Shown in pieces: positions 5,381 to 64,000 of a DNA stretch of 64,000 nucleotides (the stretch's first letter is position 1; every line of letters begins with the position of its first letter). This DNA comes from Zygnema circumcarinatum SAG 698-1b (Eukaryota; Plantae; Zygnematophyceae). Location of the stretch: NCBI GenBank assembly GCA_037447605.1, contig CM074822.1:1449492-1513491 (forward strand), read 5' to 3'. Below the pieces are notes generated by a model. The model was not told the origin of the DNA. It saw only the letters and a program-made list of their open reading frames with translations, and did no database searches. A program made the translations under genes and the position numbers.

Positions 5381-5511
5381 GGAGCTGGCAAGTGACTCGC
5401 TCTTCGAACCTNNNNNNNNNNNNNNNNNNNNNNNNNNNNNNNNNNNNNNNNNNNNNNNNNNNNNNNNNNNNNNNNNNNNNNNNNNNNNNNNNNNNNNNNN
5501 NNNNNNNNNNN

Positions 5512-15200: not shown

Positions 15201-16582
15201 NNNNNNNNNCCCCCCTCCCCCCCTCCCCCCCCACCCTCCCACACCCCTCTTCTACCCTCAATTCTCCCCCATTCTTTCCCTTTCTTTTTCCTTCCTTTCC
15301 GTACAGCCGAAAGCCGTAGAATCCGCGAAGCCAATGGCCGCATTTTCGCACTACACGACGAACCGAACGTTCTGAGGGCGTGGACCCCTGAGGAGATGAC
15401 ACCTGGCCTCGCGATGTCGCGTGCTTTTGGGGACTCCGTACTGAAGGAATTCGGATTGTCCGCAGAGCCGTCAGTTATAAGGAGAAGGCTGGAGAGGGGG
15501 GACAAGTTCGTTATTGCGGCAACGGATGGGGTGAGGGAGAGGGAGAGGGAGAGGGGNNNNNNNNNNGAGGAGGGGGAGGGAGACGGGGGAGAGGCAGAGG
15601 GGACGAGAGGGGGGGGAGGGGGGGGGGGTGGTCTTGGAGTTCCATGTGGGGGGAGGGCGTTGGTGCAGGGTTGGCAAGACAGGGGGGGGAAGGTGGTGGG
15701 GAAAGAGAGGGGAGGGGGGTGGGGGGGAGGTACAAATGGGAAGGGGGGGGGTGGGGATATAGGGAGGGAGAGGGAGAGGAGGTAGACAGGGAGGGGTAGA
15801 GTGAGGAGGGAGAAGGGAGAGCAGAGAGCGGGAGTGGGAGATGGAGAGGAGGGAAGGAGAGGAGAGAGAGAGGTAGCCATTACACTTGAAATGCATGCTT
15901 TTCACATACGACAACTTCATGGTTTAACGCTCATGGCATCTCCATAAAACCCCAAAATGTTGCCCCAGAAGCTGACACGTGGCACGTTCTGAAGCTGACA
16001 CGTGGCACTTTCTCTTGCTGCCAGCTGTGGGATGTGATGTCCAATGAGGAGGCCATTCAGATAGCGGCAAAAGAAGGTGTGAACGCTGCCGAAAAATTAG
16101 TTAGTGAAGCATGTTATAGATGGGCGAAAAATTACCCCACTTCTAAGAGGGACGACTGCACAGTGGTAGTGCTCTTTTTCGATATCTACGACTCCGATTC
16201 TGAACGAGAAAGAGTGATAGTTTCGAGCCATGGGAGTCCCGAAAAGGAAAATAATTTCGAAGTTGAAGGGGCTGCAAATGTGGTGGAGATGGGGGAGGGA
16301 GAGGGGGAGGGGGAGAAGACAAGGGAGAGGGAGAGGGAGAGGGAGGGGGAGGGGGAGAAGACAAGAGAGAGGGAGAGGGAGGGAGAGGGGGAGAGGGGGG
16401 GAAAGGGGGAGGGAGAGGGGGAGGGAGAGGAGGAGGGAGAGGGGGAGAGAGGGGGTCTATTAGGGGTACCAAGCTCGGACTCTTCGCTTCCTCCCAGACT
16501 CTCAAGTTATAAGAGAACAGATATCCAAAGCACTTTCACGGAGTCGGATGAAATTGCAAAGGAAATAAATAGTCCAAGATAG
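12300..16582 (+). CDS. Protein phosphatase 2C (PPM), plant clade E (EGR-like); exons 12300-12499, 13805-14227, 14699-14819, 15307-15530, 16025-16582; start exon not identified
   Basis: Motifs ACLYSRPGQKGPNQDTMLVWE, GVFDGHG, SGAAAV, AHVGDCRAV, LTVDHK, PGLAMSRAFGDSVLKEFG, ATDG|LWDVMSNEE, DDCTVVVLF. All junctions are GT-AG with compatible phases (0,0,1,0). Confidence 0.93.
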
Positions 16583-18392: not shown

Positions 18393-19948
18393 TTAGAGTC
18401 CGGGAAGCGACCCCAAAGTTTCGTCCCACGAAGTGAGAAGAGAAACCACGCGCGGGAAACGCTCTCTTAGATTTTGCGACTCCCCCTGTCTATCCCCCAA
18501 AATATTGCAAAAATGGACCTTCTCCTCCTCCCTCCCCCCCCCCTCCCCTCTCCCTCCTCCCTGCTGCCCCCCTTCAGCCCCTCCACTCCCCATTTCTATG
18601 TTCCCCATTTCTCTCAGTATCAGTCCCGGAGGTCCTCCACATATATGGGAACCATTTCGGTCATATTTTACAAAGGCCATAGAAGCTTTCCATCCTCCAC
18701 TCTCTATCTCTCTCACATCTCCCTCTAAGCTGACTATGGTTTCGCATCCTCCAAACATGTTTTTGGCTAACTCCTCTACTGCTCCTTCACTTGTCACTCT
18801 CGGCCAAATTAGGCTGAATGGAGCATCTTCCCTTGGTAAAGGCAGCTCAGAAATTTCCCTCCCTTGAGAGCGAAAGTGGGTTTCTTCCCTATTCACATGT
18901 GGCATTTGAAGGTTTTGTAACTCCCTCATTTGGAGATCAGTATTGAGAGTAGACTGACTTAGACTGGCTAAGGTCTTACGACTATCCCCACTCACATTAC
19001 ACCCTAAGGATTCCTCTCCCACTCCTCCAACTGCTCCTCTCTCTCTCTCTCCTGTCTCTCTCCCCTGCTGAATCAAACTCTTCTCTCGTGAAGTTCCGTC
19101 TTGCTCTCCCATCTCTCTACCGCCGCCCCCTCCATGAGACCATCTCTCACTCCCACTCCCTCCTCCTCCCACTCCCCTTCCACCTCTCACTGCTGTCTTC
19201 TTCTGCTTAGAGAGGAGAATCTCTTGCAGCCTGAGAGCCAAAGCACTTGGTGGAACTCCATTCTCGTGGTTAACCATACTCTCCATGCTTTTTTCAACTG
19301 ATTGTTCACGAGTTGGGGGAATCCCTACATCCCTAATCCATGGACTATTCATACATTTTGGAGCTCCAATAGGGGGCCTCCCTCCCCCCCACCCTCCTCC
19401 TCCTCCTCCTCCTCCTTCTCCTCCTCCTCCTCCCCCCCACCCTCCTCCTCCTCCTCCTCCTTCTCCTCCTCCTCCTCCAGTATTACTCCAAAGTGAATGC
19501 AAATCCTCTCTACTCCTCTGCATCTCTCGAAAGTGGGAGGTAGTCTCTCCCTCTTCGGGATCAGGACTCCGACAATTATCATCAAATGTGCACTGAAATG
19601 TTCCACTGGATGATGATGATAATGAGGGAGAGCTTGGGAGAGTGGCTACCGATGGACTACTCACTGCCAATAGTGGCTCTACCACAGAGGGAGAAGATCG
19701 ATATATGATGACTTCAGTTTCTTGTCTGGGAGGGGGGGTGGGATGGTTATGCTTTCCGTCATATGTGACTCTTATGAAGGAGGAGACTTCAAGCGTACGA
19801 TCGACAGTTTTTTTCGCCGTACAACCTTCCCTTTTTTTGGCACAAGAGTAGTAGGCCCTGTAGGGAAAAGAGGAAAAGAAAGGGATGAGAGTAGGAATGG
19901 AGGGCAAGCAGAAATGTGAAGAGGGAGAGAGAGAGCGAGAGAGAGAGA

Positions 19949-20042
<94 letters not shown>

Positions 20043-20952
20043 TGATGTTCGAGCTACTAGGAACACATACCTGTTGTATGGCATATCCTTTAGAGGTTTC
20101 TGCCCATATTTCCGCCATTGATGGCCGTCCTCCGGAGTCGGCATTTCGTCTGCTTTACGGACTTGCCTTTGCCTGCAAAACGTCAAAAAAAACAAAAAAA
20201 AACGAAAAAAAACACATTCAAAATGTTCTCCAATCTGCATTCCTTCCAAAGCCTCCGTGAAAGGGATCTGATGGAATCACTGTAATGCAAGTGGGTCAAG
20301 AAAAGACATATAAACGAAAAGGAGAGGTAGAGCGAGAGAGGGAGGGCATGGAGGGAGGGAGAGGGGAAGGGAAAGGGGGAGGGAGAGGGAGAGGGAGAGG
20401 GGGAGGGAGAAGGGAAGGGGGAGGGGGAGGAGGAGGGAGAGGAAGATGAAGAAGGAGAGGGAGAGGGAGAGGAAGATAGAGCGGGAGAGGGAGAGGGGGA
20501 GGGAAAAGGGAAGGGGGAGGGGGAGGGGGAGGGAGAGGAAGATGAAGGAGAGGGAGAGGGAGAGGGAGAGGGACAGGGAGAGGGCGAGGGCGAGAAAGCG
20601 GGAGTGGGAGTAAGAGAGAAAGAACGAGAGGGAGGGCGAGGGAGTGGGATAGGGAGAGGGAGGAAGATGGAGAGGAAGAGAAAGAGGGGGAGGGAGGAAG
20701 ATGGAGAGGGAAAGGAACAGGGACAGAGAGAGAGAGAGTGGGAGAGAAAGAGAAGGGAAATCGTCTAGAAACGCACCGTTTGGGAGGGCTTGTCGGAGAG
20801 GTCCCCTCCCTCTTGCCCCCATTAGCATTCGTTTGTCCTTTGTGCGGCGATGAAACGAAAGGAGGAACTTCCAGGAGCAGTTTGCTGTCAAGGGCCGGAA
20901 AGTTCCAGGAACGTTCCGCCGCTGATTGGGGCGGTGCAGTATCGGTCGCCAT
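18393..20952 (-). CDS. Single-domain WRKY transcription factor; exons 20952-20777, 20172-20071, 19857-18393
   Basis: EDGHQWRKYGQKPLKDMPYNR|AYYSCAKKREGCTAKKTVDRTLEVSSFIRVTYDGKHNH, with the phase-2 R-type intron at the conserved position. The first exon (MATDTAPPQ...SPPKR) is inferred from phase-2 donor compatibility and is less certain. Confidence 0.9.
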
Positions 20953-24511: not shown

Positions 24512-25150
24512 GTCGCGACAGACTGGTTGCGTGCGTGACGTGACGCATGGTTCAGCAATGTCGATGGAGAGATTTGGAGATGTTGACGGTGAATGAGGAG
24601 GTGCCACGTGGACTGTTAGTGGGGTCCGTGGCTCTTACGAGGTCATCTGGTCAGAATTTGCGCGAGCGGCGGACATGCACGAGCGGGCGGCGGACGTGTA
24701 CGTCCAGGCAGTGGAACAATACGGAAGGCTGCTGTAGGTCGGTGCTGGCATAGGTTTTATGTGAGTGCGCGTACCTGGCCGTTGAACGGCATTGTCATTT
24801 GCTACTGCGCCTGTGACGTGACATTGGGTGGTCACGGTGTACAAGAGCAAGCTTGGCTCTCTCTTACTCACTCTTTATGTTATGCTACTCGACCCTTTGT
24901 ATTTAGGAAGAGTATGCGGAGGCGAGGCCTAGAGGAGTCCGGCCTTGTGTAGGAAGTGTTGGAGTGGGGGATTGATCCCCGCTGCTCCCGGCAACACCTC
25001 GTGTGTCACCCTCCACAGGAACTCGTGTTCCCACCGATGTAGACATTTCCACTCTTTCACTCTCAAGGCTCTATCTCAATTCACTCATCGCCCATAACTC
25101 ACAGAATGAACACTAGAGATAAGCACAGCGGAAATCAATTGAGAGAAGTT

Positions 25151-25290
25151 GTAACAAGCCTTGAGCTCCAAGCCCAAAACCTGCTAGAGACTAAGTCACA
25201 TGAATGTATAATGCTGGTTTCCAGAGTGTATGCAAATGCCGCATCTCTGTTACTCTTGCATACGCTCCACGCCCCTTATACGCTCCCCCC
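25151..25290 (+). repeat. Dispersed repeat also present at 32623-32765 and 33855-33997
   Basis: Shared gtaacaagccttgagc...cctgctagagactaagtcac...ccacgccccttatacgctcccccc. Confidence 0.75.
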
Positions 25291-26934
25291 GTCGAACCCT
25301 CTACCAGCGTGAGGGGCCGGGAGCAGGGCTAGCCAATAGCAAAATGCCATGTGGCCAACATTGGAAAAAGTCAACGACCTTTCATTGCCGCTAGCTGAGT
25401 CCAATANNNNNNNNNNGAACCACGCCGCACGAGATTGGATCGCGCGCCCTTGACGAACGCGACACGTCGCGCTGAAAAGTCGCCGACAGTCCGTACCAGC
25501 CGTACTGTTCGTACAGATGCGTACGGACCCGTACGCCTGAGCCGTATGGTTGTACGGAGGCTTTGTACGGCCGAACCGCACAATTAACTCCAGAATGCCG
25601 GCGGCATTATGGTAACGGTCTCCATGACGCGCAGGGCATCATGGTGTCTGTAGCGTCTAGTTCGCTACAGAAGTGTAGGAAAAAGCTCACGGCTCTAAAA
25701 TTCCTTTATAATAAAATGTCCTACCCACATGAAGTTCTCCCACTACTACAAGGTAAGTCCCTCTTACTCACTACTGTTGGTGCAAGGAGGGCCCGAGAGC
25801 AGACTTCAAGGAAGGGATAAATACATGCCCGGATGAAGCTCAAAACTTTCTTCATCTTCCACTTGGGCCACATACCGCTTCCTCCACAAACTGCCTTCCA
25901 TCCACCCCTTGCCAGGTGCGCACAGCGGAAAACTAAACGCGTCACCTACAAGAACACTTCAACTCCTCCATGGTCTCGGCTCCTCAAGTCCACGCTCCTC
26001 CAATGATCTCCTCGTGTGGAGCAACACACCGCCCATACAATGGCTGCCTCCACTCATCCACCACGTCAATCCAACACGAGGACTCACATGACAAATGATG
26101 CAGTAATAAGGAGAAAGCCCACGGCCATAAAACTCCTTAAACTCATGAGTGTAATACAAGCTCTTTGAGGAAATCTACATAGTCCCTTATGCTAGATTCT
26201 CCTCCTCACATGAACGCTATCCTATTCTCTGATAGCCTACACCCCGACTGCAGTAGCCAAGTACTTATTGCCTCCATGAACTCCTCCTCTACCTCAACAC
26301 ATGAGGGACACATCATCTAACTTCTTCATTAAAGCTTAGCATGATGAGAGCTAGTTCTCACGACCTTCATACACAAGGCCGGACTCCTCTACGCCTCAAC
26401 CTTTGCTTTCTCTTCCTAAAAAACCAACGACAGAGCAGCATTACATTCAGAGAGAGTTGAGCTTGAGTTAGTGAGTTGAGTTAGTTGAGTAGTGAGAGAG
26501 CCAAGCTTGCTCTCTCTTAANNNNNNNNNNATCTAAGTCAAAGCCGCAAACCTACGACCCTAAACTATTCCTAGACCTGCCGTACCGTGCCCTAATGATA
26601 CGGGCACCCCCCATGTTCGGTCCTACACCAAACATGACCGTTCATGCATGACATTGTCCCTATACCAACACATTGATCTCCCGGACAACATTCATGCTAG
26701 GAACTAAGTACCAACACCTTGATGTACCCCATACATCAACAACTACCTCACGACACAAGTGAAGGCAGCCTGACAGCACGAGCAGGCACAGTTGAAGAGA
26801 CAGAACTAGTATGGTTATTTTCCCATAGTAAAACTATGCACTATATAATATGGCACCCGTGACGTGACACACATGTCACGTCGCGTCCGCCATTGCAAAC
26901 CCATGCACCGAGTCTCAGTGGGCGCACTCAGGAA

Positions 26935-27309: not shown

Positions 27310-29022
27310 CTCTCTAGGAAGGGAGGCGAGGCGCATGGTTAAGGCTTTGGTTAACGAGGGTAGCGAGGTGGTTAGCCAGCTCGTGCTGGGCCGGAGGGCA
27401 GGCGTGAAGGGCGGGAGGGGGAGCGGGAGAAGGAGCAGGGCGGAGTGGAGGAGACAGACACGTGCGTGGGAGAGAGGGAGGGAGGGAGAGGGGGAAGGAG
27501 AGAGAGGGGGGGAGCTGGAGAGAGGGATGGAGGGGAGAAAGGGAAGCTTGTGGNNNNNNNNNNCCTCCTCTCCCACCTGCTGTCAGCATGAACCACACCA
27601 AGCGACAATTTTATACCATTCGATCTGCCACGTGGCCGCCTCCTAAATTTAAGGCAATCATTCTACGCCGTTCGATCTGCCACGTGGCCGCCCGATCTCT
27701 TCCCATCCCTTAGGCTGCGCTCGGCCAAGTGCTCTCAAAGTCCCAACTCAATATCTCGTGCTTTGTATTCGGCGCTGATCCTTGTGAAGCCAACGTAAGC
27801 ATTGTCGGCCCGCACACATGCGGTATGGCGTGATTAGCACTTAACACTTGGCGCAAAGCGCCGCACCGAGTGCGTCAGTAGGCGAGGTTCCGCGGGTTTG
27901 ATACCTCGGAGGCGAGGTATACACTCCATAGTTCAAAGAAGAAGAGCGCGTCGTACTCAATCAAGCATACCAGCATTGGAAAAAATCATGAGAAAGAGTT
28001 GTGGTTTTGAAGGTTGGCAGTTCTCTTAAAGACGATTTTCATACGCCGAAGCGTTTGCGAGGAGCTCTCCCAAGATCGACGTTTTTATTAAGGTGCTCGA
28101 AAGTGGTGCTGCACTTCCCAGGCTGAATGTAGAGTTGTGCGATTGTTATCCAAGATTTCCACCACTTGATGCGACGAAATAACCCAACTATGCATTTGAA
28201 GTAAGAAGGAAAAATGTGAACTATCGCCGGTCCGTGCATTGCTCTTTGGAAGTACAAAAGGAGAACTTAGATCTTTGAATAAAGCTTCTTGGCATCCCGC
28301 AGTCGCATTGTCTCGTAAAAGTTCGATTGGACTTTGATAGAGTCCGATTCCAGTAAGAGTCTTATTGTCTCTTGTTAGTTGCAATTTCAATGAATCGATC
28401 TCTGCTGAATATCGACGAAGTATTTTACTTGAAGAAGTAAAGGTCGGGTAGGGGAAGGCTTTAATTTTGGGGTACTAGTTCTTCAGGCTTACACTTTGAC
28501 GGTAAAAAACTTAAATCAGCGTGCAGTGCAGGGAAGAAGTTTAGATTAGGCATAAGATTGCCATAGTTTCTGCGAAATAAAGCAGAGACACGCAGCCAGG
28601 CTTAACCACACTGATGTATCGCGAAAGGTTCGAGCAACCGAGCACAAACTGTCCCAATTTTCTGGATGTTTAGGAAACCTCTCTCCCTTTTCGTCCCTTT
28701 CTTTCCTTTCGTTTTCTTCATCTTTCGCCTCTCTCCTCTATCTCTCCATCTCTCTCTCGCCCTCCCTCCCTCCCATCCTCACTCCCTCTGCATACTCGCC
28801 ATTAGGCCGCACATTAAGTATCCAACACATCCGCGTGTGAACAAACATTGCATTTGCTTGCAAAGGACAAGCTCCCTCATATCCGTTTGACAGCAGGCAG
28901 GCACACAGAAAAAAATGGTGGGTTCAGCACAAAATCGCACGAATAGAAGTCATAACCGGCATCAAGAATACTCCCACCGAGGACTTCCTAAATGCATCCG
29001 TCTAAAACAATCCAAAACATAC

Positions 29023-29444
29023 CTAGAAATGCTCCATAAACCTTCACTTCGCATAGAGTGAGGATATTGCGTAACGTCCGACCAAAGAGGAACACCTTTT
29101 GACGAAGGGGAAGCCATCACTTGTGGCGTTGAACACGAACTTGTTAGTGGGGTCGCACTCTGTGTTTCCTTCTCCATTCCAAGTGTCATTTTTAGCACCG
29201 ATCCACACCGTCACTCCATTCAACCGTCCTTGGGCGACATCTGTTCTCCCATACAACAAAACGGAGTTCACCGTTGCATTATGACGCAGGTCCACCTTCC
29301 ACCAACCTGGTGGCTCATTAGTGCTCGCGCATTTGTCGTAGTAGTCGTCCACAGCCCTTTTAGCAGTCCAGTACACTTGCGTAGTAGAACTCCAATACCA
29401 GTAAGTGCTCGCCTGAAATGCGGGCATATAGAGAGCCAGATTGT
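29023..29444 (-). pseudogene. FTP-A exon carrying a frameshifting 22-nt deletion
   Basis: Exon length is 422 (not 3n). Between GRY and LTLCEVKVYG only 8 nt remain versus 30 nt in FTP-B, giving ...GRYAISSLYAK*. Confidence 0.75.
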
Positions 29445-32400
29445 CTGCGATCTCCAGTTGGAAAACAATTACATACAAAAAACAGAAGCATACATGAGGT
29501 CAGAATATGGTGAAACAGTATTGCAAATTGCCATCCACAAAAAACAAAATAATGACATTCCTATGCATAAAAAACAAGTGTAACTCATCCAAATGCACAA
29601 CCACTACCCGACAAGAAATATTCAGACTTACTCGCCTCTTCGATTCTCCATCATCGTCATTTACCAAACATGGAATTTGGAGCACAACTTAATAAGGACA
29701 AACATGACTTTGCCAGAACACCGACAAAAACACCCTTCAGATTTTGTCAGGAGTGGGACACTAGAATTAGATTTCAACTTCACAAAAGTCGTTCGAAAGC
29801 AAAAGACACAACCAAGGCGCAAGGTTTGAAGGAGAAGGTCGTACACCGCGGCATGCATCGAAACTCTTTTGGAAAAACGCATCTGACCCTCATTGAATAC
29901 ATTGCGACATTGGAAATCATCTCGTTTTACCTGTCAGAATTCCAGGAGGTGGGCTTGGAGGTGGAGGTGATGGCGGTGGGCTTGGGGGCGGTGGACTAGT
30001 GTCTCCACAGCCGTACACGAAGAAGTAAGTATCAAGACGTGGCTCATTTCTGTTTTAGAGAGTGGTTGATTGACAAAAATTTGCATTAAACAAGGAAAAA
30101 CCTGGAATAAGTTGGAAAACTGAAAAAATGCACGAGCTTGTGTTCGACAGACAAAAGGAACGAGAATTTATATCCCCATCGCTAGCGAACATGATGAGGC
30201 CAGAAATGTTCAGAATTTGCTTCTCTTTACATACTAGGAATTTAGTTCTCCTTGGATGCAAAGGTTGCATCTGCCCGCAGCCACTTCAGATACTGCACAC
30301 TCTCTCAAACCCTCCCTTCCCCCTCTCCTCTCAAAATCTATCCTTTCCTCTTCTCTCTTCTCCACTTTATCTTTCACTTTTTACGTCGCTCGTTTTCGCC
30401 TCTCCCTCTCTCTCACTCCCAGGCAACACTCGTCTTGTCGAAAAGGACCAACCTCTCTCACATCAGTTTCACAACAAGCAGACGCGCAGATAATCAAAGG
30501 TGGCCGATCCCAAATTCAGCGAGGAAGAAAGCTGCAACTGAAGTGGGTCTAACACTTGGAACTTAATCTAAGTTATAACCGGCATCAACAAAAGGAGCGT
30601 ACAACGAGGAGGTCCGAAATTCATCCGTCTGGGTTTATCCAAGACATACCTGCATATGTTCCATAAACCTTTACTTCGCATAGAGTGAGTCCACCACCAA
30701 TTGAAAGGTACACCCAAACGTAACGTCCGACTAGAGAGGCACACCTCTTGTTGAACGGGTAGCCATTGTTTGTGGGGCCGTACACAAAAACATTAGTGGG
30801 GTCGCACTCTGTGTTCCCTTCTCCATTGAACGCGGTATCGTTAAGACCGACCAAAACCTGCACTCCATTCAAACTTATGTAGCCATCTGTTCTCCCATAC
30901 AGTGCAACAGTGTCCACAACTGTAATACGAAGTAAATCCACCCCCCACCACTTCCCACTATTTGTTTCCGAACATCCTCCCAAATGAGGATTGCCATTGG
31001 CGTTGCCGTCCACAGCCAAATCAGCGGTCAAGTAGAGCCCCGACCCGTATCCCTCGCACCAGCAATCGTAATTATCGTCCTCCTGAAATGCGGGCTTACG
31101 TAGTGCCAGATTTTCTGCAATCTCCAGTTGAAGAATAATTAGATACCAACAAGCAGAAGTATACATGCGATCCCCATATTGTGAAACATAATGACGAACG
31201 CAATTCATTTATTCATCCACAAAAATAAGATAATGAAATTCTTGAAAACAAAGTGTAGCTCATCCAAATGCACAACCACTACCCGACAAGAAATAGTCAG
31301 AATTAAACAAACAAACATCTTCATCCGCCTCTTCGATTCTCAATCAACGTCATTGACCAAACATGAAATTTGGAGCACAAATGAACAAGGATCAACATGA
31401 CTTCGCTAGAACTCCGACGAATGTACCCTCACCAGATTTCTTTCGGAATGTGATAAGAAATTTAAATTTCACCTTGAGAACGAATCGTTCAAAAGCAAAA
31501 GACACAACCGAGGTGCATGGTTTGAAGGAGAAGGTCGTACAGTGCGGCATGCATAGAACCTCTTTTGGTACATCGCATCTGACCCTCATTGAACACATGG
31601 CTACACATGAAGTCATCTTGTCCTCTCACCTCTCTCTGGAGGTGATGGCGGTGGGTTGGGAGGTGGAGGTGGAGATGGAGGTGGAGGTGGCGATGGAGGA
31701 GGGCTTGGAGGTGGAGGTGGAGGTGATGGCCTTGGAGGTGGTGGACGAAGTGCTCTAAAGTCGTACACGACAAACTTAGTATCAAGACGTGTTTCCTAGC
31801 CATTTTAGAGAGTGATGGATCGACAAGGCTTTTAATCTAAGAAAAAAGGTGCACTCATGTAAGTCATAACCAGCATCAAGAAAAGAAACTTGCATCGAGG
31901 AGTTCCTGAATGCATCCGTCTAAAACAATCCAAGACATACCTTGAAAATTTCCATAAACCTTTACTTCGCATAGATAGAGGAAAGTGTAGGTTGGTAGGT
32001 ACACCCAAACGTAACGTCCGACCAGCGAGGGACACCTCTTGATGAAGGGGAAGCCCTTGCTTGTGGGGCCGTACAAGAAAACATTAGTGGGATCGCATTC
32101 TTTGTTCCCATTTCCATTAAACATGGCCTTGTTAGGACCGATCCACACCTGCACTCCATTCATGTATTCTTGGTAACCACCTGTCCTCCCATACAACAAA
32201 ACATTGGTGACCGCTGCAGTACCAAGTAAATCCACCTTCCACCAAATTGGTGGCCCATAAGCAACGTGAACTGTCGTGTAGGTGTCAGTATAGCCGTCCA
32301 CTGCGTCAGCAGCGGGCCCGGCAACGTCAGGGCCTGCCTTAAATGCGGGCTTATGGAGGGCCAGATTGCCTGCAATGTCAAGTTGGAAAACAATTAGATA

Positions 32401-35400
32401 CAAACACACGATTTCACTCATGTGAGGGACAATTGGGGGAGATACACATAAAACATGATGTACATACACGCAATGAATGTGATGCCTATGTAACGCATTT
32501 CTGCTGTCCACCCCTTTCTAATCCCCACTGCATAAATTCATTCTCTTCCTTTGCAGTGGCTCTCTTTTAGTCCTATTTTCTTGCTGACTCCGTCTCAAAA
32601 TCCCGCCCTATTCTGTCTGTCTGTAACAAGCCTTGAGCACAACACCCAAAGCCTGCTAGAGACTAAGTCACTTAAACGTAATGCTGGTTTTTGGAATGAT
32701 TGCAAGTGCCCCCCTTCCAAGGACCCCCTCTTGCATTCATCCCACGCCCCTTATACGCTCCCCCCNNNNNNNNNNGCGGCATGCATAGAACCTCTTTTGG
32801 TACATCGCATCTGACCCTCATTGAACACATGGCTACACATGAAGTCATCTTGTCCTCTCACCTCTCTCTGGAGGTGATGGCGGTGGGTTGGGAGGTGGAG
32901 GTGGAGATGGAGGTGGAGGTGGCGATGGAGGAGGGCTTGGAGGTGGAGGTGGAGGTGATGGCCTTGGAGGTGGTGGACGAAGTGCTCTAAAGTCGTACAC
33001 GACAAACTTAGTATCAAGACGTGTTTCCTAGCCATTTTAGAGAGTGATGGATCGACAAGGCTTTTAATCTAAGAAAAAAGGTGCACTCAAGTAAGTCATA
33101 ACCAGCATCAAGAAAAGAAACTTGCATCGAGGAGTTCCTGAATGCATCCGTCTAAAACAATCCAAGACATACCTTGAAAATTTCCATAAACCTTTACTTC
33201 GCATAGATAGAGGAAAGTGTAGGTTGGTAGGTACACCCAAACGTAACGTCCGACCAGCGAGGGACACCTCTTGATGAAGGGGAAGCCCTTGCTTGTGGGG
33301 CCGTACAAGAAAACATTAGTGGGATCGCATTCTTTGTTCCCATTTCCATTAAACATGGCCTTGTTAGGACCGATCCACACCTGCACTCCATTCATGTATT
33401 CTTGGTAACCACCTGTCCTCCCATACAACAAAACATTGGTGACCGCTGCAGTACCAAGTAAATCCACCTTCCACCAAATTGGTGGCCCATAAGCAACGTG
33501 AACTGTCGTGTAGGTGTCAGTATAGCCGTCCACTGCGTCAGCAGCGGGCCCGGCAACGTCAGGGCCTGCCTTAAATGCGGGCTTATGGAGGGCCAGATTG
33601 CCTGCAATGTCAAGTTGGAAAACAATTAGATACAAACACACGATTTCACTCATGTGAGGGACAATTGGGGGAGATACACATAAAACATGATGTACATACA
33701 CGCAATGAATGTGATGCCTATGTAACGCATTTCTGCTGTCCACCCCTTTCTAATCCCCACTGCATAAATTCATTCTCTTCCTTTGCAGTGGCTCTCTTTT
33801 AGTCCTATTTTCTTGCTGACTCCGTCTCAAAATCCCGCCCTATTCTGTCTGTCTGTAACAAGCCTTGAGCACAACACCCAAAGCCTGCTAGAGACTAAGT
33901 CACTTAAACGTAATGCTGGTTTTTGGAATGATTGCAAGTGCCCCCCTTCCAAGGACCCCCTCTTGCATTCATCCCACGCCCCTTATACGCTCCCCCCNNN
34001 NNNNNNNCTCCCGTCCCCCCATGCCCTCCTTCACTGTCCCTCCCTTAATCCTCCCCACCCCCTTGCCATCTCACCTTGCCTTCCCCTCCCTTCCCTCCCC
34101 TTCTTCCCCCTTTCCCATCCCCCCATGCCCTCTTCTCCTTCCCCTTCCACCCCTCTCTCCCTCCCTCCCTCGCTCCCTCCCTCCCTCCTCGCTCCCTCCC
34201 TCCCTCCCCTCTTGCCTTGCCCCCCAGTCCTCCACCCTCTACACTCCCTCCTTGCCCTCCCCCCCTGCCCTTTCCCCCCCCTTTGTCTTCCCCTCCCTTC
34301 CACTTCCCTCCCCTACCTTTCTCCCCTCTCTCCTGCCCTTCCCCCCTTCCCTGCCCTCCCTACCTCCCCCTCCCGTCCCCCCATACCTCCCTCAAGCGAA
34401 AGACAACCGAGGTGTAAGGTTTGAAGGAGAAGGTCGTACAGCGCGGCATTCATAGAACCTCTTTTGGAACAACGCATCTGACCCCGATTGAATACATTGC
34501 TACAAATGAAGTCATCTCGTCAGTCGTCTCGTTTTACCTCTCAGAATGTTAGGCGGTGGGCTTGGAGGAGTTGGACCAAGTGCTGCAAAGCCGCACACGA
34601 AGAACTAGGTGTCAAGACGTGGCTCTTATCCGTTTTAGAGAGTAGTTGACAAGGAAACTTTGATAAAAGAAAAAGGCGCAAAATCCAAGGCATACCTAGA
34701 GGTGTTCCATAAACCTTTACTTCGCATAGAAAGAGGTAAGTGTAGGTTGGAAGGTACACCCAAACGTAACGTCCGACAAGGTTGGAACACCTCTTGACGA
34801 AGGGGAAGCCATTGTTCGTGGGGCCGTACACAAAAACATTAGTGGGGTCGCACTCTGTGTTCCCTATTCCTTTCCACGTAACATTGTTAAGTCCGATCCA
34901 CACCTGCACTCCATTCATCCGTTCTTGGGCGACATCCGTCCTCCCATACAACAAAACAGTGTCCACAACTGCACTACGAACTAAATCCACCTTCCACCAC
35001 CTTGCATGATATGTGCTCGCGCATGTATCTTGTCCAGCATCTGCTCTGCCATTGCCGTTGTAGCCGTCCACTGCCCTATCAGCGGTCCAATACCAGAAAG
35101 TACTCGGCTGAAATGCGGGCTTATTGATAGCAAGATTTTCTGCAATCTCCAGTTTAAAAAAAAAAAAATAACACACAAACACACGATTTCACTTATATGA
35201 GGGACAACTGAGGGGGATACAACTCAAACATGATAACCACACACGCATTGAATGTGATGCCAATGTAACGCATTTACAGTACCAACCGTCTCCTGTCCAT
35301 CCTCATGTACACTCGCACTGCATCAATTCATTCTCATCCTATGTAATTGCTCTCTCAATCCTTTTTTCTTGATAACTACATCTAACAATACCACCCACTC

Positions 35401-36132
35401 CTGTCTTTACCTTCTGTTCTATTGAATCGATAACGCCCACCGCGCCATTTTTCCTTTCTCGTTGATCCTTTTCGTTGTGTATCTTCCCGGTTCTCTCTTT
35501 TTTATTTCGTTTCGCCCCTAACGATCTTTTCACTTCTCCATTGAATGACACCCTTTCCAAATATTCCTCACTTTTTTTTTACAACCACTCGATTTTACCT
35601 CAACTGTGTTCTACTCTCTCCTTTCTTTCCCAAGCCTTACTTCTTCCTCCTCTCTCCACCCTCCTCTCCAGTTTCTTCCATGCTCTACATTTCCCCTCTC
35701 GTCGTCCCTCCCCCTTGCCCCTTGCCCTTGTCCTCATCTACAAATCCTCCTCTCCCCACATGCCCTCCTTCACTGTTCCTCCCTTATCCTCCCCACCCCC
35801 TTGCCATCTCACCTTGCCTTCCCCCTCCCCTTCCACTTCCCCTACCCCCCTATCCTCCCCCCTACCTTTCTCCCCTCCCTCCTGCCCTTCCCCCGTTCCC
35901 TGCCCTCCCTACCTCCCCCATCCCGTCCCCCCCTACCTCCCTCAAGCAAAAGACAACCGAGGTGTAAGGTTTGAAGGAGAAGGTCGTACAGCGCGGCATT
36001 CATAGAACCTCTTTTGGAACAACGCATCTGACCCCGATTGAATACATTGCTACAAGTGAAGTCATCTCGTCAGTCGTCTCGTTTTACCTCTCAGAATGTT
36101 AGGCGGTGGGCTTGGAGGAGTTGGACCAAGTG
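29023..36132 (-). CDS. Modular F-type lectin (FTP/fucolectin-like) - Ser/Pro-rich linker protein. Exons in transcription order: L 36132-36088, FTP-D 35139-34696, L 34582-34538, FTP-C' 33601-33173, L 32984-32862, FTP-C 32369-31941, L 31752-31630, FTP-B 31114-30650, L 30002-29931, FTP-A 29444-29023. 5' and 3' ends not found.
   Basis: Each large exon reads NLAxxKPAFQ...A(V)DG...WWKVDL...VxLYGRTD...GNxECDP...C...GRYVWVYL...LCEVKVYG, the FTP fold signature. All exons are AG-flanked 5' and GT-flanked 3', phase 1-1, with lengths 45/444/45/429/123/429/123/465/72 nt (multiples of 3). Confidence 0.85.
31544..33997. repeat. 1.22 kb direct duplication (31544-32765 / 32776-33997, offset 1232) containing linker + FTP-C, bounded by 10-N gaps
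   Basis: Copies read as identical except cactcaTgtaag vs cactcaAgtaag. Confidence 0.92.
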
Positions 36133-36198
36133 CTGCAAAGCCGCACACGAAGAACTAGGTGTCAAGACGTGGCTCTTATCCGTTTTAGAGAGTAGTTG
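34395..36198. repeat. Near-identical ~250 bp linker-exon cassette duplicated at 34395-34650 and 35945-36198 (offset 1550)
   Basis: Direct sequence identity spanning intron, linker exon and flanks. Confidence 0.9.
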
Positions 36199-37059
36199 AT
36201 CGACAATACTTTGGACCCCTTGCCTTCCCCTTCCCTTCTCCTTCCCCTCAACCTGTTGCCCAACCCCCCCCTTACCTTCGGCCCTGGCCCTGCCCTTGGC
36301 CTCCCCCCATTGTCCACCCCTCCCCCTCTGGCTTGTTCTTTTCCCCTCCCACTTTTCCTCCCTCCTTACCCTTGCGCCTTTGCCCTCCCGCCCTTGTCCT
36401 CCCCTCCCCGCCCTCCCTGCCCCCTTTACCCCTTCCCCCATGCTCTCCCCCCCTTCCTTCCCCCCTTTCCCCCCTGCCATCCGCCCTCTGCCGTCCACCC
36501 CTTGCCGACACCCCTTTGTCCTCCCACTTGCTCATTGCCCTACCCCACTGCCCTTCCCCCCTGCCATTCCCCCCCTTGCCTTAGACCCCTTGCCCTCCCC
36601 CCCTTCCCTCCCCTTCTTCCCCCTTTCCCATCCCCCCATGCCCTCTTCTCCTTCCCCTTCCACCCCTCTCTCCCTCCCTCTCCTCCCTCTCTCCCTCCCT
36701 CCCTCCCTCCCTCCCTCCCTCCCTCCCTCCCTCCTCGCTCCCTCCCTCCCTCCCTCCCTCCCTCCCTCCCTCCCTCCTCGCTCCCTCCCTCCCTCCCTCC
36801 TCGCTCCCTCCCTCCCTCGCTCCCTCCCTCCCTCCCTCCCTCGCTCCCTCCCTCCCTCCCTCCTCGCTCCCTCCCTCCCTCCCTCCCTCCCTTGCCCCTC
36901 CCCTTCCCTCCCCTTCTTCCCCCTTTCCCATCCCCCCATGCCCTCTTCTCCTTCCCCTTCCACCCCTCTCTCCCTCCCTCCCTCGCTCCCTCCCTCCCTC
37001 CCTTGCCAGGGGGTGCACGTGTCCCTGGGCATTGGCCGGGGGGGGGGGCGTGCCTCCAA

Positions 37060-37965
37060 CCCTAACCTCGGACCTCCATTTTGTCGCTTTCCGTTCTTTC
37101 GTTTTCTTGCGGATTCTGGTCTTGGCTTTTCAATATTCGATGCGGACCCGGCCAGCTTTACGTGACGTCATCAATGTACCAATCATAGGTGGACTGAGGC
37201 ATACAGATCGAAGTGACGTAGGTGGGAGCTTACACGTTCGCTGTACAGCATTTTTGTCGTTTTGGGGGAAGGCACGTGGCGGGCTGTCGCTGCGCTGGGG
37301 AGGGTTTGCGGGTCCTTCGGGCGGTACGGTACGGCACGTTTGAAAAATGGCAGTCGTCAGTTCTGTGGCGCGTCAGTTTCACGGATCCCGTCAGAGCTAC
37401 GGAATACATATGTTTTCGTCAGGATACGTTTTCAGAACAAGTACCCGGCAAGAAACTGAATTATTTTTGGAGACGACTATTTACAGTGTCCTTGTTCTGA
37501 ATGTAGTGTACTTTTTCTTCGGGCAGCTTCTACAAAGGATGATACAGCGGGGGGGACGCCGTGCCTCCAAACCTACCCGCGAACCTCCATTTGTCGCTTT
37601 TCATTCTTTGGTTTTCTTGCGGATTCTGGTCTTGACTTTATCTATTCGAAGCGGACCCAGCCAGATACACGTGACGTCAGTATTGTACGAATCATAGTTG
37701 GACTGCGGATACAGTTCGAAGTGACGTAGAGGGAGTTTAATACGTCAATGTATGGACTTTAATGTCGTTTGTGGGGAAGGCACGTGGCGGGCTGTCGCTG
37801 CGCCGGGGGAGGGTGTTTACGTGTCCTCCGGACAGTACGGTAAGGCACATTTGACAAATGGCAGTTGTCTGTTCTATGGCGCGCCAGTTTCAAGAATCCG
37901 TCAGAGCTACGCCTACATATGTTTCGTCAGGATACGTTTTCAGGACGAGTACCTGTCAAGGGAAC
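37060..37965. repeat. Diverged ~0.5 kb tandem duplication (about 37060-37550 / 37565-37965)
   Basis: Shared ttgtcgcttt..ttttcttgcggattctggtcttg, gaaggcacgtggcgggctgtcgctgcgc, cgtcagagctacg, gtttcgtcaggatacgttttcag. Confidence 0.85.
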
Positions 37966-37972
37966 GATTAAT

Positions 37973-38346
37973 TAGGGCGTGTCAGACTTAACAAAATGTT
38001 ACGAATATCGAGTTTTTAGTATTACGAGAATCGAGGTTACTAAGTACTAAAAATCATCGCGCCCCCGAACCTAAACCGAACCGAACGGAAGTCAACTGTA
38101 TTAAGTCAACGGGTCAACGTTGCGAAGATTGACCCGTGGGGTTTACTGAAATTGNNNNNNNNNNGCGAAGTTGCGAAGACGGCGTTTGGAGAAGTGCGAA
38201 GACGGCGATCGCGGAGTGCGAACAGGACCGCGCCGCGAGTGCGAAAAACTAGGCTCGGGAATTTTAGTTTTACTGACGTTGACTCGAAATGTTACGAATA
38301 TCGAGTTTTTAGTATTACGAGAATTTTTTAAGTCTGACACGCCCTA
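37973..38346. mobile_element. hAT-like non-autonomous element, family B (TIR TAGGGCGTGTCAGACTTAA); internal gap
   Basis: 19-bp inverted termini tagggcgtgtcagacttaa / ttaagtctgacacgcccta; no clear TSD. Confidence 0.75.
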
Positions 38347-38355
38347 TTATCAATG

Positions 38356-40322
38356 GAAAATTCTATTCTCACACCTTTTTTGTCTACACACAGGCCTCTT
38401 TTCGACGGGCAGATTTTAAAATAGCACAAAAAAAGAACACACCTTTCACACCTTCTCACCTTTTTTTTTGGGTAGTGATATTTCCACCCCTTTTTTGGAT
38501 CCAAACACCCCTTCCCGGCCGGGCAGATTTCAAAAAGGATAAAAAAACGGAAAATGCTTTTGTCACACCTTTTTGGAATCGATACCACCCTCCATCGGCA
38601 GATTTGTTTTTGCGAAACAAGGAAAATGATAACCCGTCACCCCATTTGAATATCCCGCCTACCTGAATTTTTTTTCACACGTGCGGTCAATCGCAGCCGT
38701 CGATTCAGTCGCCGATCGCAACACGGCAGATCACTATTTGATTTGCAGCCGGGCTCGGTCACAGCGCATGGCACGGGACCACGTATCCCGCCAAAGTCGT
38801 CTCAAAAGTTTGTCCGTACGCATGTCGTACGGTCCCAACTTGAGGAACCCAAAATTTCGTACATTGAGATCTTAAACCAATCAAAATTTTCCACGTCAAA
38901 AATGTTGCACGTGGCAGACGTTGATTGGCTGGAAGCTAACAATGACGAGATCTCGGGCCGAGGGACGCGCGCACTCGCACGAGCGGTCCGGCTTTGACGG
39001 GACTCGTGGGCGCTTTCCATTCGCTGAGATAGAGCCTGGCTGCAGATCGAACGGTGATCTGCAGTGGTGCGATCTGCGAGGGAATCGACAGCTGCGATTG
39101 ACACACACGTGTGAAGGACGGACACCCGCGAACGATCTCGTGGCGGACGGATCTTCCGCTTCGAGCGGATTCGGGCAGGCAGATATTTCTTTCCCGCAAA
39201 AAAAAAAATCAGGGAGGCGGGATACAGTATTCAAAATGCGATGACGGGGTATCATTTTCCTTGGTTGGCAAAAATAAAATCAGCCGACGGAAGAAGGTGG
39301 GTATCGATTCCAAAAAGGTGTGACAAAAGCATTTTCTGTTTTTAATCCCTTTTGAAATCTGCCCGGCCGGGAAGGGGTATTTGGATCCAAAAAAGGGGTG
39401 GAAATATCACTACCCTTTTTTTTTCACCTTTTTTTTCCCACCTTTTTGAAATCGATACACACCTTTCTCCATCGGGCAGATTTTACCCCTTCTTGTTTTT
39501 TTCAAAGAAAAAGTTATCGGCCTGGCCGAATCCACTCGGAGCAGAAGATCCGTCCGCCACGAGATCGTTCGCGGGTGGCCGTCCTTCACACGTGCAGAAA
39601 CTGTACACCGTCGATTCTAGAGCAGATCACACCACGGCAGATCACCGTTCGATCGGCAGCCGGGCTCGGTTCCAGCGAATGGCACACGCCCACGTGTCCC
39701 ACCCGAGCAGGCTCGAGGACCGTACACAACTCGTACGGTCGCAGCTTCGAGGAAAGTCTAAATTCCTTACATTGCGCGCTTGAACCAATCACCATCTGCC
39801 GCGTGCTCTTTGTAGACGTGGCACACTGTGATTGGTACAGGCACAACTTTAATTATTACGTTTTTTGACTTACCTCGAAGCTGCGGGCGTACGCCTTTTG
39901 TACGGTCCTTGGAGCCGGCTTGGGTGAGACACGTGGGACAGAGCCCGGCTGCTGATCGAACGGTGATCTGCATGGTGCGATCTGCGTGAATATCGACGGC
40001 GGAAAATTATTGCACGTGTGAAGGACGGCCACCCGCGAACGATCGCGTGGCGGACGGATCTTCCGCTCCGAGCGGATTCGGGCAGGCAGATATTTTTTTC
40101 TCTGAAAATAAATGATAAGGAGTAAAATCTGCCCGACGGAAAAAGGTCTCACGGCGCTCGGCCGCTCAGGACGAGTAGCGTGTATCGATTCCAAAAAGAT
40201 GTGAAAAAAAAGGTGAAAAAAAAAAGGTGTGACAGGTGTGTTCCTTTTTTGTCTATTTTAAAATCTGCCCAGCGAAAAGAGGTCTGTGCGTAGACAAAAA
40301 AGGTGTGAGAATAGAATTTTCC
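38356..40322. mobile_element. ~2 kb foldback element made of nested inverted modules
   Basis: Outer arms 38356-38455/40228-40322, inner arms 38465-38590/39298-39420, and two further diverged inverted pairs (38660-38900/38950-39200; 39540-39870/39870-40090). Confidence 0.7.
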
Positions 40323-41426: not shown

Positions 41427-44232
41427 ATTGGGAGGGAGGGAGAGGAGGGAGGGAGGGAGAGAGCCGACGCAAGAGAGCGGGGGCCGCGGGAGTGGCCGCT
41501 ATAGAGGGAGGGAGGGAAGGAGGGAAGGAGGGAGGGAGGGAGGGAGGGAGGGAGGGATGGAGGCAGTTTGCACCATGTTACCAAGCCTTCTCCGCCCCTC
41601 GCCTACGAATGAGGACCACCCCGGAGAGGACGGCTGGCCAAACTGCCTCGTGTCATTCGTGCCTTGCCTCCCCGGTCCGCCTGCATTGGCATCGCGTGGG
41701 TAATGCTTCGACATCGTATCAAGTGGCTGCTGAATAAATTGTGCCACGAGCTGCTGAATTGAACCACTGGCCGCGTTGTCAATCACGGATGCAATCACGC
41801 GCGCGTTTCCCATTAGTCTGAGCTCATCTTGCGAGTAATCAATCCACCTGTGCGTCAAGACTCCAACAACCTCGCGGTCACACACAGGACGTCCGTTGAT
41901 CTTCTCAAACAGCGCATCTTGCCGCTTGTACCGTCGCAGAAGCCGCGTCGCACCGACGCGCCTGACAGTCCGTGCAATGAGAACAGGATGTCTGAGCCTG
42001 TCGATGCTGACACGATGGGAGGGGGGGAGGGAGGGAGGGAGGGAGCCGACGCGAGAGAGGGGGTGGCTGCGGGACATGCCTCGATATTTGCACTGCAGNN
42101 NNNNNNNNGGAGGGAGGGAGGGGAGGAGGGAGGGAGGGAGAGAGCCGACGCAAGAGAGGCGGTGGCCGCGGGAGTGGCCGCTAGAGAGGGAGGGAGGGAA
42201 GGAGGGAAGGAGGGAGGGAGGGAGGGAGGGAGGGAGGGATGGAGGCAGTTTGCACCATGTTACCAAGCCTTCTCCGCCCCTCGCCTACGAATGAGGACCA
42301 CCCCGGAGAGGACGGCTGGCCAAACTGCCTCGTGTCATTCGTGCCTTGCCTCCCCGGTCCGCCTGCATTGGCATCGCGTGGGTAATGCTTCGACATCGTA
42401 TCAAGTGGCTGCTGAATAAATTGTGCCACGAGCTGCTGAATTGAACCACTGGCCGCGTTGTCAATCACGGATGCAATCACGCGCGCGTTTCCCATTAGTC
42501 TGAGCTCATCTTGCGAGTAATCAATCCACCTGTGCGTCAAGACTCCAACAACCTCGCGGTCACACACAGGACGTCCGTTGATCTTCTCAAACAGCGCATC
42601 TTGCCGCTTGTACCGTCGCAGAAGCCGCGTCGCACCGACGCGCCTGACAGTCCGTGCAATGAGAACAGGATGTCTGAGCCTGTCGATGCTGACACGATGG
42701 GAGGGGGGGAGGGAGGGAGGGAGGGAGCCGACGCGAGAGAGGGGGTGGCTGCGGGACATGCCTCGATATTTGCACTGCAGTGTGCTGGTGTTTTACTTGA
42801 CTCGTTTACAGAATTTCCAATGCTTGGGACAGTAATTCAGTGCAATGTACCAGGTCTGATGGCGAACGATGGCATTTACCAAGAGACTGTGAAGCATGCC
42901 ACCAGCCTGCAGCACTTTCAACATTGAAAGCTTTTTAACCGAGAATTTGTAAACTAGGCCAAAACATATGTCGATAAGATAATCTTGCTAGGCTTTTGGA
43001 GTGCGAGTTCCATTGGGAACATCACTATAACCACACAGAAAAAAGCTCGAAAACACTTACAGACACAAAATCGTGCAACTCAACTCAATCGCACACTCCC
43101 TCCATCCCTCCCTCATTCCCACGCGCACAAAGGTAATGCTTTATAAACGTACCAATGCCATTCGGNNNNNNNNNNGGAGGGAGGGAGGGGAGGAGGGAGG
43201 GAGGGAGAGAGCCGACGCAAGAGAGGCGGTGGCCGCGGGAGTGGCCGCTAGAGAGGGAGGGAGGGAAGGAGGGAAGGAGGGAGGGAGGGAGGGAGGGAGG
43301 GAGGGATGGAGGCAGTTTGCACCATGTTACCAAGCCTTCTCCGCCCCTCGCCTACGAATGAGGACCACCCCGGAGAGGACGGCTGGCCAAACTGCCTCGT
43401 GTCATTCGTGCCTTGCCTCCCCGGTCCGCCTGCATTGGCATCGCGTGGGTAATGCTTCGACATCGTATCAAGTGGCTGCTGAATAAATTGTGCCACGAGC
43501 TGCTGAATTGAACCACTGGCCGCGTTGTCAATCACGGATGCAATCACGCGCGCGTTTCCCATTAGTCTGAGCTCATCTTGCGAGTAATCAATCCACCTGT
43601 GCGTCAAGACTCCAACAACCTCGCGGTCACACACAGGACGTCCGTTGATCTTCTCAAACAGCGCATCTTGCCGCTTGTACCGTCGCAGAAGCCGCGTCGC
43701 ACCGACGCGCCTGACAGTCCGTGCAATGAGAACAGGATGTCTGAGCCTGTCGATGCTGACACGATGGGAGGGGGGGAGGGAGGGAGGGAGGGAGCCGACG
43801 CGAGAGAGGGGGTGGCTGCGGGACATGCCTCGATATTTGCACTGCAGTGTGCTGGTGTTTTACTTGACTCGTTTACAGAATTTCCAATGCTTGGGACAGT
43901 AATTCAGTGCAATGTACCAGGTCTGATGGCGAACGATGGCATTTACCAAGAGACTGTGAAGCATGCCACCAGCCTGCAGCACTTTCAACATTGAAAGCTT
44001 TTTAACCGAGAATTTGTAAACTAGGCCAAAACATATGTCGATAAGATAATCTTGCTAGGCTTTTGGAGTGCGAGTTCCATTGGGAACAACACTATAACCA
44101 CACAGAAAAAAGCTCGAAAACACTTACAGACACAAAACGCGCAACTCAACTCAATCGCACACTCCCTCCATCCCTCCCTCATTCCCACGCGCACAAAGGT
44201 AATGCTTTATAAACGTACCAATGCCATTCGGC
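41427..44232. repeat. Triplicated unit (about 41427-42098, 42109-43165, 43176-44232) separated by 10-N gaps, each with a minus-strand ORF of unknown function
   Basis: Offsets 682 and 1067; a few substitutions/indels between copies; ORF core HPVLIARTVRRVGATRLL...LTHRWIDYSQDELRLMGNARVIASVIDNAASGSIQQLVAQFIQQ. Confidence 0.9.
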
Positions 44233-63951: not shown

Positions 63952-64000
63952 GTGTGTATCACTCTATCTATATCAGTATTTTCATTTCCACTTTTCATTG

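Follow-up and report, generated by a model that had tools for sequence, protein, structure and literature searches.

Results

Layout of the exon array

The window analyzed here is a stretch of 64,000 nucleotides (nt) from the alga Zygnema circumcarinatum SAG 698-1b (CM074822.1, 1,449,492-1,513,491); all positions given below are window positions. Between 29023 and 36132 its minus strand carries ten exons, in which five exons matching F-type lectin domains (FTLDs; FTP1 to FTP5) alternate with five Ser/Pro-rich linker exons (La to Le; Table 1). AG stands before and GT behind each of the ten, and each is of phase 1-1, opening with two codon-completing bases and closing with one extra base. The initial annotation, which had been made from the letters of the window, described five FTP exons alternating with SPPPP-type linkers and held that every intact exon is a multiple of three in length and of phase 1-1. 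The alternation and the exon limits proved exact; the number of lectin exons requires correction, because one of the five (FTP4) is a near-identical copy bounded by assembly gaps and another (FTP1) is frameshifted. Nine of the ten exons are regular class 1-1 modules (one exon per module, symmetric, a multiple of three in length), and FTP1, the exon that is not intact, departs from this rule solely by a 22-nt deletion. When the ten exons are spliced together, the frame stays open until FTP1 is reached. Searching the full window with tblastn found no further FTLD exons.

The linkers are of the annotated type. Ld/Lc and Le each hold four to five Ser-Pro(3-5) glycomodule runs, which range from SPPP to SPPPPPP. 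Tyr is absent from every linker exon, and with it the cross-link motifs YXY and VYK. By their sequence, the linkers thus look like extensin-type glycomodules, yet they are short and lack the cross-link motifs.

Table 1. Exons, gaps and related elements of the FTLD/linker array, with expressed exons that are spliced to array-like exons and lie outside the window
Feature	Position	Strand	Description
Linker exon La	36132-36088	-	45 nt, phase 1-1, 14 residues, Pro/Ser-rich with one SPPP
FTLD exon FTP5	35139-34696	-	444 nt, phase 1-1, intact, motif Ser-Arg-Asp-Arg
Linker exon Lb	34582-34538	-	45 nt, phase 1-1, same sequence as La, 14 residues, one SPPP
Assembly gap (10 N)	33998-34007		within Lb-FTP4 intron
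FTLD exon FTP4	33601-33173	-	429 nt, phase 1-1, inside gap-bounded contig
Gap-bounded contig with Lc and FTP4	32776-33997	-	copy of 31544-32765
Linker exon Lc	32984-32862	-	123 nt, phase 1-1, 40 residues, inside gap-bounded contig
Assembly gap (10 N)	32766-32775		within Lc-FTP3 intron
Dispersed repeat, part in intron	32622-32765		76% identical to 25150-25290
FTLD exon FTP3	32369-31941	-	429 nt, phase 1-1, intact, motif His-Arg-Gly-Tyr
Linker exon Ld	31752-31630	-	123 nt, phase 1-1, 40 residues
FTLD exon FTP2	31114-30650	-	465 nt, phase 1-1, intact, motif Glu-Arg-Asp-Ser
Linker exon Le	30002-29931	-	72 nt, phase 1-1, 23 residues
FTLD exon FTP1	29444-29023	-	422 nt, frameshifted; donor GT at 29022 retained
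Off-window expressed exon	beyond FTP1-like donor 29023		begins A-T-S-T-P-A-S-F-S-Y (X8/X20)
Off-window expressed linker	beyond FTP5-like donor 34696		begins E-I-G-P-P-P-P-S-P (X8/X20)
Off-window expressed FTLD exon	beyond Lb-like donor 34538		begins D-N-L-A-L-R-K-P-A-S (X8/X20)

Lectin identity by profile and predicted fold

All five larger exons match PF22633 and PF00754 in Pfam with E-values of 1e-6 to 1e-10, and the PF22633 scores of all five (28.9-39.5 bits) lie above the cut-off of 27.8. A profile of the four distinct exons, searched against the PDB, retrieved striped-bass FBP32 (E-value 1.7e-27) and eel agglutinin (2.8e-16), followed by the FTLDs of S. pneumoniae and S. mitis at about 1e-7, and an exhaustive profile search of a representative library gave 4428 matches, mostly with animal multi-FTLD proteins at the top of the list; the named ones among 20 of the profile-search matches that we checked were from animals or bacteria. 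Consistently, an AlphaFold2 model of FTP5, based on 43 aligned domains, reached a predicted local distance difference test (pLDDT) value of 88 and a predicted template modeling (pTM) score of 0.86. In a Foldseek comparison of this model with the PDB, ranks 1-11 were taken exclusively by FTLD structures (2j1t, 2j22, 3le0, 3cqo, 1k12) with template modeling (TM) scores of 0.74-0.81 at 24-32% identity, whereas CBM32 and discoidin folds trailed at about 0.6 (CBM32 at about 0.62), and the AlphaFold DB clusters matching the model consist of FTP proteins. On profile and model grounds, the assignment of these exons to F-type lectin domains is solid, as the annotation had anticipated when it named the return of the FTP/F5-8 fold by a profile search as its own check. 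Searches by word index were less productive: FTP2 had no match among proteins of 85-270 amino acids, the four-exon alignment found seven single-domain fucolectins from animals and bacteria at 31-37% identity and no algal relative, and the open reading frame (ORF) of FTP3 had no exact match in public contigs.

Homology between units and divergence as coding sequence

The likeness between units extends from the exons through the introns (repeat families D2 and D5-D14), with identities of 46-79% in 150-nt intron flanks versus 68-76% in exons, which bears out the annotated homology of the introns. A block around La (35916-36199) is 99% identical to 34366-34649 around Lb over 284 nt. Public sequencing data were used here and below in the form of short Logan contigs, compared with the window, from two DNA runs (X1 and X2) and two RNA-like, transcriptome-sized runs (X8 and X20). 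In DNA contigs of X1 and X2, La-specific sequence continues past 36199. La is a solo linker, and unit homology stops slightly upstream of it, with CT-rich low complexity beginning at about 36224. We envision that a unit of 1.2-1.7 kb, composed of a linker exon, an intron, an FTLD exon and another intron, was duplicated in tandem to build the array. Unequal crossing-over or gene conversion might later have reshuffled it, and such exchange is made plausible by the near-identical blocks and by the mosaic pattern in which the introns resemble one another.

Long CT-rich tracts with a strong strand skew (GA-rich on the coding strand) lie in and around the array at 28680-28790, 30290-30420, 34008-34380, 35640-35940 and 36224-37010. 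CT-rich tracts are also found at the ends of the window (1-5400 and 60000-64000; GC content 0.75, GC skew -0.93).

Have the lectin exons been maintained as coding sequence? When substitutions were placed at random at the observed divergence, a copy stayed stop-free in 1-3% of trials (pairwise simulations from one exon), and all five indels that separate FTP5, FTP3 and FTP2 are multiples of three. These exons diverged as coding sequence. Chance ORFs or non-coding repeats had been considered as an explanation, and they were rejected in view of the open frames, the lengths of the indels, the profile E-values and the RNA described below.

Assembly gaps and the number of distinct lectin domains

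Because the two gaps that interrupt the array are intronic and every flanking exon is of phase 1-1, its frame is independent of them. Between these gaps, the contig that carries Lc and FTP4 differs from 31544-32765 at a single position in 1222 nt (31858, T versus A). The DNA runs continue in the same way after 32765 (X2) and after 33997 (X1), namely into a repeat that is also present at 25150-25310, and this continuation matches the one seen at 25291; both contigs therefore stop at one point of one repeat. Unitigs of four runs pass without a branch through 31544, where the duplicated stretch has its left end. The unitig that represents FTP3 and FTP4 has a depth of 9.2 in X1, which equals the single-copy depth of 6-9.4, and a depth of 1.3-2 times single copy in X2, so that the two runs together do not decide the copy number. 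We consider a redundant contig, be it an allele or an error variant, distinctly more probable than a very recent tandem duplication. With the near-identical copy thus set aside, the array most likely holds only four distinct FTLD exons, three of them intact and one, FTP1, broken.

The repeat in which the contigs end is dispersed (76% identity), with instances at 25150-25310, 32622-32765 and 33854-33997; contigs end in it at 32765, at 33997 and near 25406, and it may lie behind many of the gaps in the window.

Could the array itself be in part a product of assembly, in which scaffolding over 10-N gaps brought together short contigs of several paralogous FTLD genes? The whole window contains 17 gaps, the middle contig is apparently redundant, and in DNA contigs the units are joined in many other ways (29059->34733, 29475->32402 and 34521->29945 among them). 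We nevertheless hold this explanation to be very improbable. FTP1, Le, FTP2, Ld and FTP3 share one gap-free contig (27564-32765), as do Lb, FTP5 and La (34008-38154), and DNA unitigs of independent runs match unique intron stretches perfectly (100% at 29229-30220 and 31394-31596). Sequence that precedes 34008 in X1 resembles 35717-35746, and the introns that follow Lb and La are colinear on either side of the gap, which argues for a correct order of the scaffold. Finally, an RNA contig links an Lb-type linker with an exon of the FTP3/4 type.

Transcription and splicing

In the RNA-like runs X8 and X20, depth is high on exons and nil or very low in most intron bins, whereas X1 and X2, the DNA runs, extend over exons and introns alike. 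One joint, 31114->31630, was found in RNA only (X8, depth 1374): it skips 515 nt that are bounded by CT..AC, which is GT..AG on the minus strand, and it coincides exactly with the predicted junction between Ld and FTP2. Another RNA joint, 33599->34538 in X20, connects an Lb-type linker with an FTP3/4-type exon and carries two changed letters. Transcripts thus join linker and lectin exons, a condition on which the initial annotation had staked its proposal. In addition, loose ends of RNA contigs start exactly at the predicted donors 29023, 31941, 34538 and 34696, the one at 31941 running into the first letters of Ld, and use of the acceptor at 33601 is seen as well. RNA depth is 790-2023 on FTP2 and 823 at 29800-29999 around Le (both X8), and it is also high at 34600-34999 around FTP5. 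Junctions of Le and of La were not seen among the RNA joints.

From which copy does this RNA originate? On FTP2, the RNA and DNA runs carry the same 7-8 differences from the window. These belong to a larger block, 30388-31090, which comprises FTP2 and the intron just downstream and in which two DNA and two RNA-like runs share 12-13 differences from the window (about 2%), while the unique introns on either side match it at 100%. This pattern suggests a converted block, a haplotype difference, or letters of a paralogue that entered the assembly. Since the FTP2 letters in RNA are those of DNA runs whose neighboring introns match perfectly, at least the FTP2 part of the RNA probably originates from this locus or an allele of it.

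Other RNA junctions lead elsewhere. The exons to which FTP1-like, FTP5-like and Lb-like exons are joined in RNA were searched for in the window and not found there (Table 1), and these spliced off-window exons show that at least one further expressed family member exists. DNA depth at FTP5 and at the tail of FTP1 is 7-13 times that of single-copy sequence. Taken together, the off-window junctions and the elevated depth mean that close paralogues or divergent alleles of other strains exist and are strongly expressed. Several combinations of linkers and FTLDs occur among the Logan contigs, in which origins from paralogues, strains and isoforms look alike.

A gene segment or a decaying paralogue

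We lean, if only somewhat beyond even chances, toward the view that the array represents part of a real gene that is transcribed and specifies a protein of multiple FTLDs and proline-rich spacers, or else part of such a gene from a small family whose members are near-identical. Such a gene would encode a modular protein of extracellular type, in which Ser-Pro(3-6) spacers of 14-40 residues connect FTLDs of about 143-155 residues, each FTLD and each spacer being placed on a phase 1-1 exon of its own. The spacers are probably stiff and possibly glycosylated on hydroxyproline (Hyp), and they would hold several beta-jellyroll heads apart, so that the protein might bind repeated glycan epitopes in the wall, in the matrix or on other cells in a multivalent manner. 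Here, secretion, Hyp-glycosylation, multivalent binding and the ligand are what we infer. Reading the architecture as a multi-headed chimera of a lectin and an element resembling a hydroxyproline-rich glycoprotein (HRGP) is reasonable, and the roles that the annotation had listed, wall cross-linking, gamete recognition and microbe sensing, are speculation.

Several observations weigh against this reading. The 14 kb upstream of the array were scanned for an ATG with a hydrophobic stretch and then a phase-1 donor behind it, and no credible start or signal-peptide exon emerged. As assembled, the locus is therefore a gene fragment or a truncated paralogue; the missing 5' exon may be located past the window or in a gap. 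At the other end, FTP1 lacks 22 nt between 29070 and 29069, which results in a frameshift, a stop at 29046-29044 and the loss of the last beta-strands. The ratio of nonsynonymous to synonymous substitution rates (dN/dS) between units is 0.4-0.8 overall and reaches 0.99 regionally, which amounts to weak constraint. The exact FTP2 letters of the window occur in no run, and several RNA junctions lead to exons missing from it, so that the RNA could stem from paralogues in part or entirely. No close protein relatives were found in the libraries searched, the best being animal fucolectins at no more than 38% identity, and the array is surrounded by repeats and gaps.

Many of these observations would be explained if the array were a truncated, decaying paralogue or pseudogene of an FTLD/proline-rod family, whose functional and highly expressed members reside elsewhere in the genome and supply the RNA. 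The 5' truncation, at which the solo linker La gives way to low complexity and repeats, fits this explanation, as do the frameshift of FTP1, the absence from the window of the exons spliced to FTP1-, FTP5- and Lb-like exons, and the level of dN/dS. On FTP3/4, moreover, RNA contigs differ from the window at 5 of 206 positions and DNA contigs at 0-1, and the DNA depth at FTP5 and the FTP1 tail points to several copies at 95% identity or above. Words that span the FTP1 deletion occur only in X3, the probable source sample, and in the transcriptome-sized X25 among the runs listed (a weak test, with two sampled words); an intact FTP1-like tail is present in all four of X1, X2, X8 and X20 (joint 29059->34733). 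Accordingly, the sequenced sample probably does carry the deletion, which is not common to all copies or strains. On the other hand, the three remaining distinct FTLD exons and all linkers are open, with intact splice sites and with indels in multiples of three only; the Ld-FTP2 junction agrees with the window to its left and right, and it carries the variant letters of DNA contigs whose flanking unique introns match perfectly. We therefore regard decay as the less probable explanation, albeit one to be reckoned with, and retain the gene segment as our preferred reading.

Upstream of the array, the minus strand of 37060-38000 holds two similar copies of about 400 nt, to which stretches at 38300-40250 are related. 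They match no protein family and are probably transposon remnants.

State of the sugar-binding site

The last points that speak against the gene reading concern the binding site. The canonical fucose motif is formed by His52, Arg79, Asp81 and Arg86 of eel agglutinin (PMC5712786), that is, by a His followed by Arg-X-Asp-X4-Arg/Lys, which we read at alignment columns 54, 85, 87 and 96. There, FTP5 and FTP1 have Ser-Arg-Asp-Arg, FTP3 has His-Arg-Gly-Tyr and FTP2 has Glu-Arg-Asp-Ser, so the full His-Arg-Asp-Arg is found in none of the four distinct domains and the first Arg alone is invariant. The vicinal Cys-Cys that contacts fucose is likewise found in no copy, the columns reading Val-Ala or Gly-Tyr; some tandem FTLDs from other organisms lack it too (PMC5712786). 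Of the annotated "fucose-type lectin", the fold of an F-type lectin stands and the complete fucose motif does not. As every head lacks part of the canonical triad and the missing part differs among heads, the ligands are probably not plain fucose, and the sequences suggest that the ligand may differ from head to head.

In the alignment, other features of the domain appear mostly kept. The cation motif h-h-D-G-x reads AVDGN in FTP2, which is canonical, and comes close to the canonical form with AVDGY in FTP5 and FTP3 and AVDDY in FTP1. The Cys pair aligned with Cys108/Cys124 is invariant across the exons, and the pair aligned with Cys50/Cys146 is kept in FTP5 and FTP2, lost in FTP3 by replacement of the first Cys with Tyr, and out of frame in FTP1.

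Alternatively, the domains may have kept the F-type fold and lost lectin action, serving as structural or as protein- or lipid-binding modules in the manner of discoidin C2 domains. The incomplete motifs and the absence of the vicinal Cys-Cys from every domain would be in line with this idea; FTLDs with deviant motifs may have lost sugar binding, and the C2 domain of factor V binds phospholipid (PMC5712786). Still, the first Arg is invariant, two of the four domains retain the Asp and the second Arg, the cation motif and the two disulfide pairs are mostly retained, and some FTLDs of oyster bindin, which works as a recognition protein, are without the triad as well (PMC5712786). Non-lectin modules are in our estimation less probable than not, albeit an option to be reckoned with.

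Discussion

How does this array relate to known lectins? In green algae, diatoms, brown algae and oomycetes, FTLDs occur singly or in tandem and mostly together with other domains, and none have been found in higher plants (PMC5712786), in agreement with the annotated view of FTP as a domain of some algae that is not standard in land plants. Viral FTLDs group with those of Volvox and Chlorella (PMC5712786), and receptor-like kinases of Chlorophyta have been reported to contain FTLDs (PMC12757656).

The closest analogue is the sperm bindin of the oyster Crassostrea gigas. It contains one to five tandem FTLDs, which have been diversified by positive selection, intron recombination and alternative splicing, and its repeat number has been proposed to vary via recombination and alternative splicing (PMC5712786). 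Like the Zygnema array, bindin has its tandem FTLDs in one gene, its repeats were duplicated along with their introns, and some of them lack the His-Arg-Arg triad; GA/CT microsatellites lie in its introns beside the FTLD exons, as do CT-rich tracts (GA-rich on the coding strand) in introns of the array. Unlike the array, however, bindin is an animal gamete protein in which a variable intron splits each FTLD in mid-domain, whereas here one exon holds each FTLD, and it has no Ser-Pro spacer exons. One might go further and propose an algal counterpart of bindin, that is, a family of multi-FTLD recognition proteins that evolves fast, varies in copy number and tells self from non-self among mates, gametes or associated microbes. 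In such a family, the triad would be diversified in each head, and the number of heads could shift by recombination within the homologous, repeat-rich introns or by skipping of phase 1-1 exons. We consider this extension improbable.

The best matches in both sequence and fold are the tandem F-type lectins of fish and amphibians (MsaFBP32, PDB 3cqo, and the multi-FTLD proteins of Xenopus), whose binding sites are non-identical between domains, as they are here. Their identity to the array is 30-38%, and their domains adjoin directly or via short peptides. Moreover, they are serum lectins that have kept the basic triad, whereas the array combines an incomplete triad with extensin-like spacers. 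The green-algal and viral FTLDs of Volvox, Chlorella and prasinoviruses belong to the same lineage and represent the same domain, singly or in tandem, as far as the descriptions of Bishnoi et al. (via PMC5712786) extend. FTLDs that alternate with Ser-Pro spacers were not found described in the literature searched.

Combining a binding head with a proline-rich rod has precedents of another kind. The hevein-extensin lectins of Solanaceae and the pherophorins and sexual agglutinins of volvocine algae consist of globular binding heads and Ser-Pro(n) rods and belong to the wall or matrix. These chimeras have one or two heads and long rods, and their heads adopt other folds; the array has several heads, spacers of 14-40 residues and no Tyr motifs.

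F-type lectins have been studied almost wholly in animals and bacteria, and those of green algae are known from database surveys only. At this locus, an algal F-type lectin follows the building plan of mosaic proteins from animals, in which every module has a phase 1-1 exon to itself, and is combined with extensin-like spacers from the wall repertoire of the green lineage. We consider the arrangement modestly novel: what is new is how the parts are put together, while the FTLD itself, tandem arrays of it, its presence in green algae and wall proteins made of lectins and proline rods were already known. The gain from this locus alone is correspondingly modest, because the parts are known and the assembled copy is incomplete.

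Other features of the window

Three regions outside the array attracted attention. On the plus strand at 15990-16250, a motif resembling the C-terminus of a PP2C phosphatase can be seen by eye (LWDVMSNEE ... DDCTVVVLFF); it is unconfirmed, with no PP2C match in Pfam. The region 41499-43900 contains tandem copies spaced about 1067 bp apart, each with an ORF of 192-203 amino acids on the minus strand that belongs to no Pfam family; two of the copies are identical and lie between 10-N gaps, and the copies represent either a satellite-like repeat or further redundant contigs. On the minus strand at 18396-20276, a split WRKY DNA-binding domain (PF03106, E-value 7e-15), in keeping with a genome of the green lineage, is encoded by a stop-free stretch; its WRKYGQK and zinc-finger parts are separated by an SL-repeat that is probably an intron.

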